A stretch of 63,859 nucleotides of DNA, filler included, from Choristocarpus tenellus KU-1152 (GCA_964200185.2; 12 parts of 12 records of this genome joined end to end with filler, not necessarily neighbours in it), one strand, 5' to 3'; counted from the whole stretch's first letter, positions 10,207 through 17,640 are shown. Numbers and translations are program-made. Notes: generated by a model not told the origin, from the sequence alone.

Positions 10207-13200
10207 AGTGCACGTGGGGGTTGATACCACGGATTGCTCTGATAGACCCAGGTCCGATTCCAACATTAGTTGGGCGTATTCTTCTTGGAAGCTATGTCTA
10301 AGATGGATGGGTCTTACGTGGAAGGGTTTCACATAAGAAGCATGAACAGTACGAGTGCGTGTTTGCCTATCTAGCAGTTCAACCGTCATGCTAATAATAC
10401 TCTGATGTGAAATTTCCTTAACAGTTCACGGTCCCGTCCATCTTTCATGGACTAGCTTTCTGCCTACTCTTCTCTCACCTAGTTTTTCCCTATTGATAGA
10501 GCTGTCCGCTTCTTTCACTAGAGCTAGGTCACCTGGTTTGGATCTTAGTCCTGGGGAAGACCTAGCAATCAAAAGACTGGCTCTTTCTCTGTATTTCTGT
10601 CTTGTAGACATCCGTCTCTCCAGGACTTCTCGTTCCTCCCTGAAGTTCTAATCCTCCAACCTCTATGTCCCCATCCAACTTGGGTATGACGGCGTCTAGC
10701 TGTGTGCGGGGATCACGGCCAAAGAAGACTTGGAAGAGGGTGGGGTTGAGGGGGTAGGATGGGTCTAGAGTAGTGTGTTGTGCCCAAAATGCCGGAGATA
10801 CATACTCATCCCATCTATCTGGCCAATTCACACATAGTTCCGACAGGACTTCTAGAAGCCATCCTCTCATCGTTTCTACTCCCCCTTGTCCTCTTGAGTT
10901 GCCAGTGGGTCCATAATTGGTAGGGACTTTCAGCCAACGACAAAGGCGATTCATTACGTCTCCTGTGAACTCCGCTACTGCATCACTACGAAATGACAGT
11001 GGGATCCCAAATATAAGACATAATTCCAACACGTTTGTTGCTACTCCAGTTGCTTCCTTTGACGTCATTGGGAATGCAAAAGAAAATCTCGAAGCTCTAT
11101 CAATCACAATTAATAGATACTTGTTGCCTTTCACTGAGAAGTGTCCTACATCTTGTGGATCCATCTCGAGTACATCCCATGGTTCCAGGAACTTGGCTGG
11201 CAGCATTGCCACTTGTGTGCTCCTAGTCCTCTTTCGTCTTCGACAGCCACAGGATAAAGCTTAATCCTGCGTGTCTTTGTGGAGTGAGGGTCAAAAGAAC
11301 TATCGATGGGTTAGGGCTACTGTGCGTCCAACTCCCTTGTAGCTAGTCTGCATGTGTACTAGTGCTATGATGTCTGACACTAGTAAACGAGGAACTGCTA
11401 GCCTAGGTGTATACTATCCAGAACTGTACCAGAGTAACTTCTTATCATCTAGGGAATATGACTCTACATCCATACTACCTATTTCCCACTCAAGTGATGA
11501 CTTCCAGTGTTCTTGGCCTTCGAGTACACCCCGTATGCTGCCCAAGAAGGGGTCTTTCTTTTGTCTTTCCACTAGCTCTGGTATGTCTGAGAGAGTGGTC
11601 GTGCTCTCTTGAGAGTGGGGTGGTGTTTAACCATCTCACTCATTTCGGACTGGTCTGTTACTACCCTTCTTGTTCGTTAGCCTCGGTGTACTTTTGGGCC
11701 TCTTCTTGAATGGTGACTTCTCTTCTCCTGCTGTTCCCTTTATTTCTACCCTGTCTTCGAGGGTGGGGTCTAAAGGTTGCCAGCCAAAAGTGTTAGTACC
11801 ATCGAGCGGGGGAAGAGGGTGCTGTAAGACGAGGGTCTGGTATACGCTAGGTGTCTTGTCTGGGGCCATCCAAACAGAGTGAGGGAGCATAGGCACTGGT
11901 GGACTTTGATCCTGGGGTCAAATGAGTGGTAGCCAACCTCCAACAACCAAGTTGTGACTATCAGGTTCCGAGGGCAATTTTGTAATGCTGACAATATTCC
12001 TGAGAATGTGGTATCAACTGTTCCCTGAAGTGACATGTGCCCTACCCCTAGACTCGGTTCCTCATGTGAGAGAGAAGTACATTCTAGTTCTGAATCTACC
12101 CACGCACAAAGAGAGTAAGGGGACAGTGTGGGGTGACCTGGGTTTAGATCTGATGCACCTAAATCCTGCAAACAGACACCATCTAAGACGGGTCCTCTTG
12201 GTCCAGTGTAGCTCTTTCTATAAGCTACTGATGGATCGTCACGAAGGAATCGTCGATATCCAAACCTGAGGCCGTTGGTAGAGGGAGTCGTGATAGTCCG
12301 TCTGGTAGTTGGTGCTTTGAGCCTGCTCGCCACTTTAATTCCATATCATGGCCCATGAGGCGGAGGGCCCACCTGTGGAGCTTGGGGCTAAGTTCACGAC
12401 TCTTAAAGAACCAGGTGAGGGAATGTATCTTAGAGGGTACGAGTTTTGCCCTGTTTGTCCGTTTGGGCCTTGGCTTTCCATTTCTTTTTAATGACATTTT
12501 CCTACTCCAATTTTTTTCAGAGTAGGTAAATTGTATGCGTTGTGAAAAAGTGTCACTGGAACAAGGATATTGACACTTCTTAACAAATGGGATGGCCAAA
12601 ATTGAATAAAAATCGCAACATTGGATTTTCGTCCTCAAATGGATACGGCTCTACCCACTAGATACTTTGGCTCAGGTCAGTGGCTGAGCAGTCAGTGATT
12701 AGAGTGAATTTCCTACCCCAGATGTAGGAACGGAAGTGTTCTACAGCCCACAAGATAGCCATGCATTCTCTGTCAGTGGGTGCTCGTCTGCTTTGTGTTT
12801 TAGACCATTTCTGGCTAGCATAAACTATGACGTGTTCTAGGTCATCATCCTGCACCTGGGTCAGCGTTGCTCCAGCCCCTACTTCACTCGCATCTGTATG
12901 CAGAAGGGACGACTTATCCCAATCAGGAAAGAGTAGGATTAGTGGAGAAACCAAACGCACCTTGAGTTCTTCAAAGGCCTTCTGCTCCTCTGATACCCAA
13001 GGGATACTCTTCTTCCTGTCTCTTTTGGAAGCATACCCTTTATTGCGTAGGATGCTAGTCAGTGGTGCAGCTACTTGGCCATAGTTTGGAACAAACTGTG
13101 GCATGTATCCTGTCATGCTTAGGAAACTTCTCAGCTGTTCAACTGTCGATGGGGGATCAAGTTTTGCTACTACTATCATTTTGGATGGAGCAGGGCTCAA

Positions 13201-15635
13201 GCCATCTCTACCTACCTTCATTCCTACAATTTCCCGTGAGGGCATGCACCACAGGGACTTAGGAAAATTCACAGACAAACCTTATTACTTGAGTCTGGTC
13301 AGGAGGAGGTGAAATTTGGTCATGTGTTCATCGAATGATGAACTATAGGGAAAAAGATCGTTTAGCCAGTTTTCTACACCATTTCCTTTGAGATCTCCCA
13401 AGGCCTCTCTCATGTGACTAGAGAATACTGCAGGTAGGATTTTCAAGCCAAAGCCACACCTGTTATACTCCCAACGTTGTCCATGAGCGTCGCGGAAGGC
13501 TCTCTTATGTTTATCTACCTCTGCGATCTCTAACTGAAAGAATCCTGACGATAGATCTATTGCCTTAAAATAGCTAGACCCTTTGAGTTAATCGAAAATG
13601 CCGGTAATGTTCCCGAGACCTCCACTATCACTACATGAGAGATGATTGAGCATCCTATAGTCTGTGCACAACCTCAAGGTCCCATCTTTCTTACGTACTG
13701 TTACCACTGCTGCTGCCCATGCTGAGGTGGAGGGTCTAATGATACCACGTTCCTGCAACTGTTTAACCTCCGCTTGAATCATCTGCGTTTCTTCTGGAGA
13801 AAGGCGTCTTTGTTTTTGAGCAAGGAGTGCGGTTTTCATTTATGAGCGGTACTTCGCTAGAACATGGGGGAACTCGCTTAGGAAGTACTCCTAGATTCCG
13901 AAATTCCTCTAGCAATCTTTCTAACCGTTCTTTCTGACCTGGCGTCAGCTGTCCCATATTGGCATCACTAAGGCTCACCGCTTGATGCTGGATCCCCATC
14001 GCTTCTTTCGAAGGAGTGTCGCTTCTCTCTTCAACCGAACAGTTACTGATATTATCTGGTTCAGAGGAACGACTGGATTGGGACCTAGCAGTAGCGGACT
14101 GGACCTGTACTCTTGGGGATTCTTTGGGGTGTGTGGTCAGTGACTTGAAGAGTGCAATCATATTTTCTGTATCTTGAGTGTTTTGAGTATTTAGAGCAAT
14201 TGCCTTGGCAACTGGTAGCCCTGCTTAGACACTACTCGATACTAATGGGTTTGCTGCATGTGTTTACCAATTCGCACTATATGGGGGTTCCTGGGTTCCA
14301 CCATTGTACACCTCTGGCAATTCCGACAGCGTTTCCAAGTTCCAAGTTATACTCAGACAAGGGCTCAATCACCACTAGCTGTTTGGACTGTGGTTGTGCC
14401 CCCTTAAAGAATCCTTTGCAAATCCTGCTGACAAACCCTTCTACATTTTCTACTTCTGATAGACGTAGTTCGCACTGTAGAGTCCCATCAATCTCCCATA
14501 CTACCTCTGCTGGGAGGGGCAGTGGACCTGGATTCTCCAGTGATGGGGATAGAGGATCCTTGTCTTAGGTAAGATCTATTGCTACAATACCTGCTTCTGG
14601 ATCCGCATCTGAGGTATTTGCTCCTGGGTCTACATAAAAAACACTTGCAAATTCCTTCCCTGGTTGCGTATGTCCATCAGTTGGAGTACTAGCGCATCTC
14701 GGGGACCTGGAAAGTGTGTCAGGAGGGGGTTCTCTTCATCCAGCTGGTCTGGGGGTATTAAGAGGTAAACTGGGGTACTTGGACGGTCGGGTTTTGGGTG
14801 TCATTGATGCTTACCATTCTTCTAGGGCTGACAGGGGTATACTGTTATCACGAGGTCTGGGTGTCACAGCTCGGGCAAAAGGTTATCTAAACAACAATAT
14901 GCTCTTGTGTTGCCTACACAGAATGCTGCTCCCAGAACCATCCCATGAGGTAGACCTTCTACTACTCTGAACGTTATATTGCAGACTCTATCCTCTGGGG
15001 GAAACAATATTGGTAGTACGCAAGATCCTATTACCTGCATTGGTGGAATATTATGTCCTTTCGGATTTGCTGCTTGCAACGTACCTTTACCTGCCCAGTT
15101 GAGGTATGGTAGGCCGGTGCTACCTCCCCAGAGGGTAGTACTGCGCCAAAAAGTAGACGAAATGTAGTTCCCACCTCCTGCACCTGTGTCAAGGAGTATC
15201 TGTACAGGCGTTCGCGAGCGGACTTTGCGAGGATGCCACAACAGCACAGATATCCATACTTGACTAGTTCGTTGGGCATATAACATAGCGAATATTGTAA
15301 ACGAAGTAGGTGTGGGAGTCATGCTTCTTATAGCTACAGTAGCGAAGTACCCTGGGGCTCAAGGCTCCAGGGCGCACCTTCAGGGAAACTGCAACACTTC
15401 ACCATCGGTCGAACTGCTTGCAGTTAGTGGTGGAAACTCAAAGCCTTGCATTGCGGCGAGGTAATGCAGATGCGAGTCTGCCAAGGCTACCATCTTGCGT
15501 GGCTCGTGCCCTTGGGTAGTACTCTGCTTGCCTTGGGATAGGTATGCGAAGTAGCCTTTAGGTACTATGGAGTCGTCGTGGGTATACCTGTACCTGCGGC
15601 TGATAGCCTTGAAGCAGTCGCGACCCAAAGCGTGA
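10207..15635 (-). mobile_element. Degenerate Ty3/Gypsy retrotransposon 1 (gag remnant-PR-RT-RNase H-IN)
   Basis: Protease ILLDTGAG (~15190). RT IRPSTSAWAAAVVTVRKKDGTLRLCTDYRMLN. RNase H LHTDASEVGAGATL..DRECMAILWAVEHF..ITDCSA-LTW..KLHRWALRL. Integrase YLLIVIDRASRF..SFRSD..WDEYV..WTGP. Gypsy domain order; many stops and frameshifts. Confidence 0.95.
12417..12673 (-). mobile_element. MITE family A (Sola2-like), 257 bp, TSD AGGT, inside Gypsy-1 RNase H
   Basis: TIRs GAG(GG)AATGTATCTTAGAGGGTA / TACCCACTAGATACTTTGGCTC. AGGT at 12413-12416 and 12674-12677. Removing it rejoins the RNase H ...CSA-LTWFFKS sequence (one extra nearby base shifts the frame). Confidence 0.92.
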
Positions 15636-15892
15636 GAATCAAAGTATCTTAGAGGGTAGAGTCGCGTCCATTAGGGGGCCAAAATCCAATGTCGTGATTT
15701 TGATGTAATTATAGCTATTGTGGTTTGTAGGAGATGCCAATATCCTTGTTCCGGACACAACGTTTCATAACATATATTTTACCTACACAGAAATGGTTTT
15801 GGGGTAGGTAGTATGTCATTAAAGCCCGTGGGAAGCCAAGCCCCAATTGGAGAAACAGGGAAAAACTCGTACCCTCTAAGATACTTTCACTC
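15636..15892 (+). mobile_element. MITE family A, 257 bp, at the junction of two different Gypsy elements
   Basis: GAATCAAAGTATCTTAGAGGGTAG...TACCCTCTAAGATACTTTCACTC. No direct TSD (flanks GTGA / TCAC). Confidence 0.92.
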
Positions 15893-17640
15893 TCACAGCT
15901 GCTCAAGATTGTGCAGCTGTTCCTGGGCAACCTGTAGCTGCCCAGCCAAGGCCTGCATCTGTTCTTTATTCAATGGTTCAGGCGACCATGTCCCTTCCAG
16001 CGAGTTACTCACAGTTGATAGAGCAGTACGAAAATTCCCGACCATACATGATGTGGTATGGCGTAGTGTTGTATCATTCCCAATAACCTGTGTTCAGGAC
16101 CCACTGCACAGCAGGCAAATAATTTACCCAGTCACTGACCGGCATTTCCCCTCGCTTAGCATCGCCTTCAGCGTCCTTATCACCTCACGCATCATTCTCT
16201 CCCCTGTCCCATTAGTCCAGGTGGAGTTAGCTATTGTAAAGCGGTGATCCACCCCAGATAGCTCCTGTATCTGCCGCAGTACCTGGTTCTTGAAGTGGCT
16301 TGCCGTATCGCTCACCAAAACCTCCGGCACCCCCATTATTGCACACCACTTGTGCAAATGCCCAGCTGCAATCTCGGCATTGCACGTTTCCGCTGGTTCC
16401 AACCATGTGAAACTGCTTAAGTCATTCATCATGACCAGGATGTACTTATAACCTTTGCTCTCGTCCAGACCATCATCCCCCTATGGCCAGCTTTCACCTA
16501 AGTGAAGAACCTGCCCCACCGATGTGCTGTGCACCGTCTCCCAATAGGGTCTGGATACACGCTCACCAGCCTTGAAATTCAAGCAATCCTGTACAAACTC
16601 CGCCACGTCTGCCTCCAATGTAGATCAAACGCAATACCCCCTTTAGTCTCTGCACTGTTGCTGCCCTGCCACGATGCCCAGCTTCTCCCATATGTGCACA
16701 CACTATCAGGCGCGTTTGCAGATCCTTGGCCTCATCAGGTATCCACAGTGGGACTGTAACCTCTGCACCCACCCGTATCATGTTATCCTGGTCTTGATGT
16801 ACAAGGCCAGCAGAGGTCATAATTCCTCCACTTGCATGCATCGTCACACCCCCTAGGGCCTCGATGCCCACTAGTTGTGCCTCATATATCACCGCTCTCG
16901 ATGGCAGGGTGTCCTCCCCCTGCACCTCCGGACACACGGCTACAGCTCGCACCGCCACCGTAGGGACATCAGTCCACCTAGACAACAAGTCCCCCCAGCA
17001 GTTCAGCTCTCCAGCGATGTGATGGATACTGTAGTTGTACTGTCCCAGGAACGTGGTACAATGTAAAAAGACGTTGAGCAGTGGCCTTAGATAGGTCGGT
17101 AGCACACAGGGATGGGTGAAAGATATAGGCGAGATTTCGATGGTGAGTCAAAGTATCTTAGAGGGTACGAGTTTTTCCCTGTTTGTCCATTTGGAGCTTG
17201 GCTTCCCACGGGTTCTAATGACATATTACCTACCCCAAAACCATTTCTGTGTAGGTAAAATATATACGTTATGAAAAGGTGTGTCTGAAACAAGGATATT
17301 GACATCTCCTAATAACACAATAGCCATAATTACATCAATGTCTCAACATTAGATTTTCGCCCCCTAACGGACGCGACTCTTCCCTGTAAGATACTTTTAC
17401 TATGTTCGCAAAAAATGTGGGCCCCCTGCTACCAGAGCACCCACTCCAAATGCCGATAAGTTCCCACAATGGCAAACACCTCCTAATCCACCGTGGCCCA
17501 GCGTAGCCGTGATCCCCGGAAAGAACTACTCAGGAATCCCAGTGACTCATGGCTGATACGTTCCACTGCCACGCCTCCATTCAGCTCCACCTGAGGGATC
17601 TGTGTAACAAAATCGCCCCAGTACTTGTCAGAGGCGTCTG
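15893..17640 (-). mobile_element. Degenerate Ty3/Gypsy retrotransposon 2 (RNase H-integrase), a different family from Gypsy 1
   Basis: DASDKYWG..HIFCDHRNLAYIF (split by a MITE), YSIHHIAGELNCWGDLLSRW, CAHMGEAGHRG, VPEVLVSDTASHFKN..WTNGTGERMMRE. Confidence 0.92.
17145..17402 (-). mobile_element. MITE family A, 258 bp, TSD TGGT/TGTT, inside Gypsy-2 RNase H
   Basis: TIRs GAGTCAAAGTATCTTAGAGGGTA / CCCTGTAAGATACTTTTACTA. Removal restores the FCDHRNL motif. Confidence 0.92.

Follow-up and report, generated by a model that had tools for sequence, protein, structure and literature searches.

The window analysed here is a stretch of 63,859 nucleotides, filler included, from Choristocarpus tenellus KU-1152 (GCA_964200185.2), in which 12 parts of 12 records of the genome are joined end to end. 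Repeat finding covered positions 10207-17640, a patchwork of retroelement remains. One Gypsy element on the minus strand contributes an integrase core (10562-11212; Pfam rve, 7.8e-09) and the RNase H part of pol (12658-13278; Pfam RT_RNaseH_2, 2.6e-31, and RT_RNaseH, 1.6e-24). Among named proteins, the RNase H part is closest to C. tenellus pol fragments, listed as 'unnamed protein products', with 69-84% identity. Its reading frame enters a short element, here called copy A (12417-12673, plus strand, 257 bp, GAGGGAATGTATCTTAGAGGGTA to TACCCACTAGATACTTTGGCTC), and then stops. The same pol is found again on the other side of copy A (12225-12414, minus strand; translation of the open reading frame ...HRWALRLMGHDMELKWRAGSKHQLPDGLSRLP), one frame off. 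Copy A is inserted into the RNase H part and oriented opposite to pol, and the preliminary description was right in calling it antisense to its Gypsy host.

The flanks of copy A were compared separately with paralogues, and the frame relation was derived from the coordinates. At about 12684, at a distance of 8 nt from copy A, a 1-nt insertion (GTGG, where other Gypsy copies have GTG) puts the two pol halves in different frames. When copy A is removed, 29 bases remain where other Gypsy copies have 28. The host Gypsy is a dead copy, whether it died before the insertion or since.

The minus strand carries another, separate Gypsy fragment at 16124-17105. It comprises a weak integrase core (16124-16432) and a 180-aa open reading frame without a Pfam match (16563-17105), and another copy of the element, copy C, sits just beyond it.

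The element family and its copies

Three full copies of the element occur in 10207-17640: copy A, copy B (15636-15892, minus strand, 257 bp) and copy C (17145-17401, plus strand, 257 bp). Searches with the Gypsy pol returned three C. tenellus proteins, all of them Gypsy fragments, whose contigs in the same assembly (L001-L003) added two full copies and two partial ones; the sample of copies is consequently biased toward transposon-rich DNA. Contig L001 carries the same Gypsy family (83-88% DNA identity) together with the same element family. A profile built from the five full copies (A, B, C and two in L001) matched copies A, B and C end to end (nhmmer E 1e-80 to 1e-84; 2.8e-80 for copy A). 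Altogether, the 18.2 kb of C. tenellus DNA examined holds five full and two partial copies, or about one per 3 kb.

The ends, GAGTSAAAGTATCTTAGAGGGTA ... TACCCTCTAAGATACTTTGACTC, are common to all five full copies and confirm the family end GAGT that had been proposed. They form terminal inverted repeats of 20-27 nt with 90-93% complementarity in copies B and C. Pairwise identity among the full copies is 76-89%, and copy A is the most diverged (76-80% to the others). Copy A is predicted to fold into a single long hairpin (-73.4 kcal/mol, z -2.9). At least two subfamilies can be told apart by the sequence around a central palindrome. A short central palindrome, CCTACTCCAAAA...TTTTGGAGTAGG, is present in most contigs, in copy A (12486-12516) and in both L001 copies; copies B and C carry CCTACCCCAAAACCATTTCTGTGTAGG at the centre (17214-17251 in the window).

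We observed a very uneven depth across this region when contigs of run X1 were placed on it (more than 31,000 contig pieces). Bins over copies A to C reached a summed depth of 2e5 to 6e5 and Gypsy bins 3e3 to 1e4, so that element bins stand about 100-fold above Gypsy bins, with single contigs having a depth of about 10-30. These values suggest a family copy number of the order of tens of thousands, the depth itself not being a copy number. More than 130 contigs of run X1 pass from one copy's end to a second copy's start (15892 to 17144 or 17145, and 15892 to 15635), and eleven such joints 'go back 258'. Such end-to-start joints indicate that many genomic copies abut or form head-to-tail arrays. 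Run X3, from a second organism of the same study, contains the element family (605 pieces) and a Gypsy copy with an empty site. Either the family is common to two taxa or the X3 sample is mixed.

Searches for relatives of the element gave little. Rfam returned no match to it, and a protein search with its longest frame (one reading frame translated) found no homologue. An exhaustive search of 1.84 billion representative proteins, again with one translated frame, gave three weak matches, none of them credible. The first was a repeat-rich secreted peptidase of 1,947 aa, bearing a Por_Secre_tail domain and encoded among bacterial genes (L005, 10001-15844), which we took as a chance resemblance; the repeated domains of this peptidase illustrate how short transposon peptides can yield spurious multi-stretch matches. 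The second led to a metagenome contig without any copy of the element, and the third was not traced to DNA. The absence of credible protein matches indicates that, in the frame used, annotated proteins do not contain the element; on introns it is silent. No copy was found in the other-organism loci L004-L008. An exact DNA pattern of the element found nothing in metagenome contigs or viral contigs, and a gapped pattern found nothing in metagenome contigs or prokaryotic genome contigs. No autonomous partner was found in these searches.

Target duplications and element boundaries

Copy A is flanked on both sides by the 4-bp sequence AGGT (left, 12413-12416; right, 12674-12677), which we regard as a target site duplication (TSD). 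The plus strand at 12405-12680 reads AACCAG/GTGAGGGAATGTATCTTAGAGGGTA ... TACCCACTAGATACTTTGGCTCAG/GTCAG (slashes mark boundaries). This agrees with the reading AACCAG/GTGAGGG...AG/GTCAG in the preliminary description, the ending of which can also be written CACTAGATACTTTGGCTCAG/GTCAG. The would-be intron named there, 12415-12675, also stands; the element proper is shorter and occupies 12417-12673.

Two kinds of empty site match the copy A locus. In contigs of three runs, position 12413 is connected to 12704 through 28 other letters. These are a diverged version of 12676-12703 and come from other Gypsy copies without the element. The second empty site is in a paralogous Gypsy copy in L001 (3070-3140, reverse complement), which reads ...GAAGAGCC-AAGT-CAGTATGG. 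In window orientation, ...CTCTTGAAGAGCC-AAGT-CAGTATGGAGCAG of L001 is set against ...AAAGAACC-AGGT-(element)-AGGT-CAGTGGCTGAGCAG of the window; a single A(A/G)GT stands where the window carries AGGT, the element and AGGT again. The claim that an inverted-end element plus its AGGT duplication builds a formally perfect GT-AG unit, whose removal restores the target, is thus borne out by L001 and by the contigs of three runs.

The other copies were found next to different sequences. The L001 copy at 2625-2879, inside pol, has TCCA on both sides, against CCTCC-TCCA-TACAG at the corresponding empty site in L002. The other L001 copy (1743-2000), likewise inside pol, has AGAG on the right and AAAG with one base lost on the left; its empty sites in L002 and L003 read ATCG(C/T)-AGAG-CTAGAC. 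Copy C has TGGT on the left and TGTT on the right, provided that the terminal base of the element mutated from C to A. Copy B lacks a clean 4-bp duplication (GTGA vs TCAC). Its inverted repeat extends 4-8 nt farther out than in the other copies (15632-15896; GTGAGA...TCTCAC, perhaps AGC(T)GTGA), and an AGC triplet flanks it on each side. Copy B may represent a longer variant, a product of recombination between two copies, or an insertion whose target was palindromic. Tabulated over the five full copies, the duplications do not favour an AGGT preference: AGGT occurs at copy A only, the others being TCCA, AGAG with AAAG, TGGT with TGTT, and none at copy B.

These flanks can be parsed in more than one way. 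A 4-bp duplication with symmetric ends, GAGTC...GACTC, appears to be the most economical model on the sequences at hand. A C follows ...ACT in six of the seven right ends, as expected of a conserved terminal C. Boundaries that differ from this model, giving a duplication of 5 bp or of 3 bp, seem unlikely to us. With 5 bp, the ends would be asymmetric (GAGT...ACT) and the duplications would be CAGGT, CTCCA, ATGGT with ATGTT, and CAGAG with CAAAG. This parsing is suggested by copies A and C and both L001 copies, in which the base following ...ACT, GCT or GTT equals the base five positions upstream of GAG, but it would require an asymmetric preference for C in the target. With 3 bp, the ends would be GTGAG...CTCAC, the duplications CAG, ATG and GCT, and the GT would be the element's own rather than the target's. 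Copies A and C do each begin with GTGAG, and copy B reads GTGAGA...TCTCAC with AGC on each side. However, both L001 copies lack the GT ahead of GAG that a GTGAG end would need, and the consensus ahead of GAG across hundreds of contigs is AT or TT, not GT.

Splice-site resemblance and the introner alternative

On the plus strand, copy A and its duplications read AG/GT-GAG...CTC-AG/GT. The GT of the left duplication would be the donor dinucleotide and the AG of the right one the acceptor. The preliminary description added that the arrangement works in either orientation. The symmetric ends allow this in principle, although the reverse strand of copy A itself has no GT-AG. The literal ATG/GTGAGT that it placed at 17140-17148 is present, at the left junction of copy C (TGGT/GAGT), which thereby has the look of a GTGAGT donor. 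The right junction of copy C reads ...TTTTACT/ATGTT, without AG.

GT and AG occur together in one of the five full copies, namely copy A. Copy C resembles a donor but lacks the AG, the AG alone is present at the L001 copy of 1743-2000, and the remaining two full copies have neither. GT stands directly ahead of GAG in two of the three copies in 10207-17640 (A and C). The seven right flanks start with AGGT, ATGT, TCAC, AGAG, TCCA, ACTA and TCTT, so AG comes first in two of them. The loose-end consensus of hundreds of contigs is ...TTAT/GAG on one side and CTC/AATA or AAAA, or CTCT/TTAG, on the other, with an agreement of 0.34-0.41. The typical flank is accordingly AT-rich and variable, not AGGT. 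Splice sites were not consistent at the family boundaries across the five full copies, the seven right ends and the contig consensus.

AGGT and ACCT together make up 1.04% of the 4-mers in the local host DNA, the AGGT background being about 0.5%. With about 1% of such sites and about ten thousand copies, about 100 pseudo-introns are expected by chance, without selection. The intron look of copy A is probably explained by chance, copy A having been singled out because of that very property.

All seven copies or ends lie in or beside Gypsy sequence, in a sample reached via Gypsy proteins, and none of the seven, all on Gypsy-bearing contigs, is located in a host gene. A gene model in L001 (2109-2552) sits between two copies of the element, which are not modelled as introns. 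We considered whether a 258-bp 'intron' of an L002 gene was a copy of the element and rejected this, as the 258 bp are coding sequence of pol that the model leaves out. The annotated gene at 2779-3747 in L002 is a Gypsy pol fragment, and what its model treats as 'introns' are stretches of frameshifted coding sequence that it passes over. In gene models derived from transposons, RNA support is needed before annotated introns can serve as evidence.

We interpret copy A, with a high degree of confidence, as the ordinary insertion of a high-copy non-autonomous DNA transposon (a MITE) whose resemblance to an intron is accidental. A transposase supplied in trans would recognise the inverted ends of about 25 nt, and its staggered cut of 4 bp would duplicate four target bases. 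By chance, copy A would have hit an AGGT where RNase H is encoded in a Gypsy pol that was already decaying, in the orientation opposite to pol. The left duplication's GT would then adjoin the element's GAG, and the element's CTC would adjoin the AG of the right duplication, producing the GT-AG mimicry. On this reading the mimicry arises by chance from the target sequence and is no evidence of splicing for copy A or for the family.

The alternative is that the family is a true introner, with copies at exonic AG/GT sites spliced out exactly and adding introns in the brown-algal lineage, and with copy A a non-genic member. We consider this very unlikely. In this scheme the 4-bp duplication would supply the GT and AG, and the inverted ends would provide GAGT at donor positions +3 to +6 as well as the pyrimidine tract. 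The ends fit the splice consensus unusually well, with GAGT at +3 to +6 and the pyrimidine-rich ...CTCTAAGATACTTTGACTC before the acceptor, and the anatomy GT/GAG(T)...CTC/AG permits exact restoration of the target. The symmetric ends would make the scheme independent of the orientation of insertion, and a very high copy number means many trials. Precedents also exist: among described introners there are families with inverted ends and 4-bp duplications in which one splice site is co-opted, and others in which both are co-opted from the target (PMC9860276), and many transposon superfamilies give rise to introners (PMC12130899). Against this stand the lack of a genic copy among the seven copies or ends, the occurrence of both dinucleotides in a single copy (n=5) and the AT-rich flanks of the family as a whole. 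The pairwise identity of 76-89% gives no sign of a recent burst, and over 90% of the introns in brown algae are reported to be ancient and to have been stable since a burst that preceded the Phaeophyceae (bioRxiv 10.1101/2024.02.19.579948). A full-text search of the literature on introners and brown algae retrieved no introner reported in brown algae.

Relation to known elements and introners

The family resembles other MITEs in its small size (257 bp), in having no coding capacity, in its inverted ends (about 25 nt) and brief target duplication, in its foldback structure and very high copy number, and in insertions that are present or absent between paralogous sites. The family shows inverted repeats, a non-coding sequence, a high copy number and target duplications with an empty site (AGGT for copy A and TCCA for the second L001 copy), the duplications of two further copies being degraded and copy B not fitting. 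The target duplication is TTAA in piggyBac and Kolobok, TA in Tc1/mariner and Stowaway, and a 3-bp TWA in PIF/Harbinger and Tourist. The duplications AGGT, TCCA, AGAG and TGGT set the present family apart from the MITEs of the piggyBac and Kolobok, Tc1-mariner and PIF-Harbinger groups. The family appears to be new, no earlier description having been found, and judging from its sequence it would belong to a superfamily other than the TTAA, TA or TWA kinds.

The mechanism put forward in the preliminary description is of a known kind and chemically plausible here. Introner families of Symbiodinium have 4-bp duplications and terminal inverted repeats, carry their own 3' splice site and obtain the 5' one from their duplication (Gozashti et al. 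2022, PMC9860276); they were defined from many introns in unrelated genes (PMC9860276). The present family shares with them the inverted ends, the 4-bp duplication and the origin of part of the splice signal in the duplication. It differs in that both dinucleotides would have to come from the duplication, so that only AGGT targets work, and in that the Symbiodinium introners are true introns, whereas this family is known from Gypsy-bearing DNA alone. Florenciella introners co-opt both splice sites from the insertion site and were found as real introns (PMC9860276). In these, as would hold here, neither splice dinucleotide is carried by the element, but for the present family an intron role is a formal possibility only.

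In the sources cited by PMC9860276, the DNA-transposon introners of Micromonas and Aureococcus are described as hundreds to thousands of copies that are genic introns, and some Aureococcus introners add codons (PMC9860276). The general idea, DNA-transposon ends plus a duplication supplying the splice sites, is the same; in our case retroelement DNA is the setting of every copy seen, and the flanking consensus is AT-rich. A later survey of 8,716 genomes recorded 1,093 introner families in 201 genomes, over 98% of them aquatic, unicellular or fungal (PMC12130899).

Brown algae are rich in introns and underwent an early intron burst, and a transposon family shown to make introns there would be valuable. 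There is only a slim chance that the family is a working introner of this early-branching brown alga, in which case copies of the element would make up some of the lineage-specific introns in Choristocarpus (and in the second organism). If true, the family would rank as the first brown-algal introner and would serve as a live model of the burst of introns at the base of the group. As a MITE family, it is useful as an entry in repeat libraries, and it holds a caution, in that a MITE with splice-like ends, if present in some ten thousand copies, would be expected to yield about 100 perfect-looking pseudo-introns by chance.
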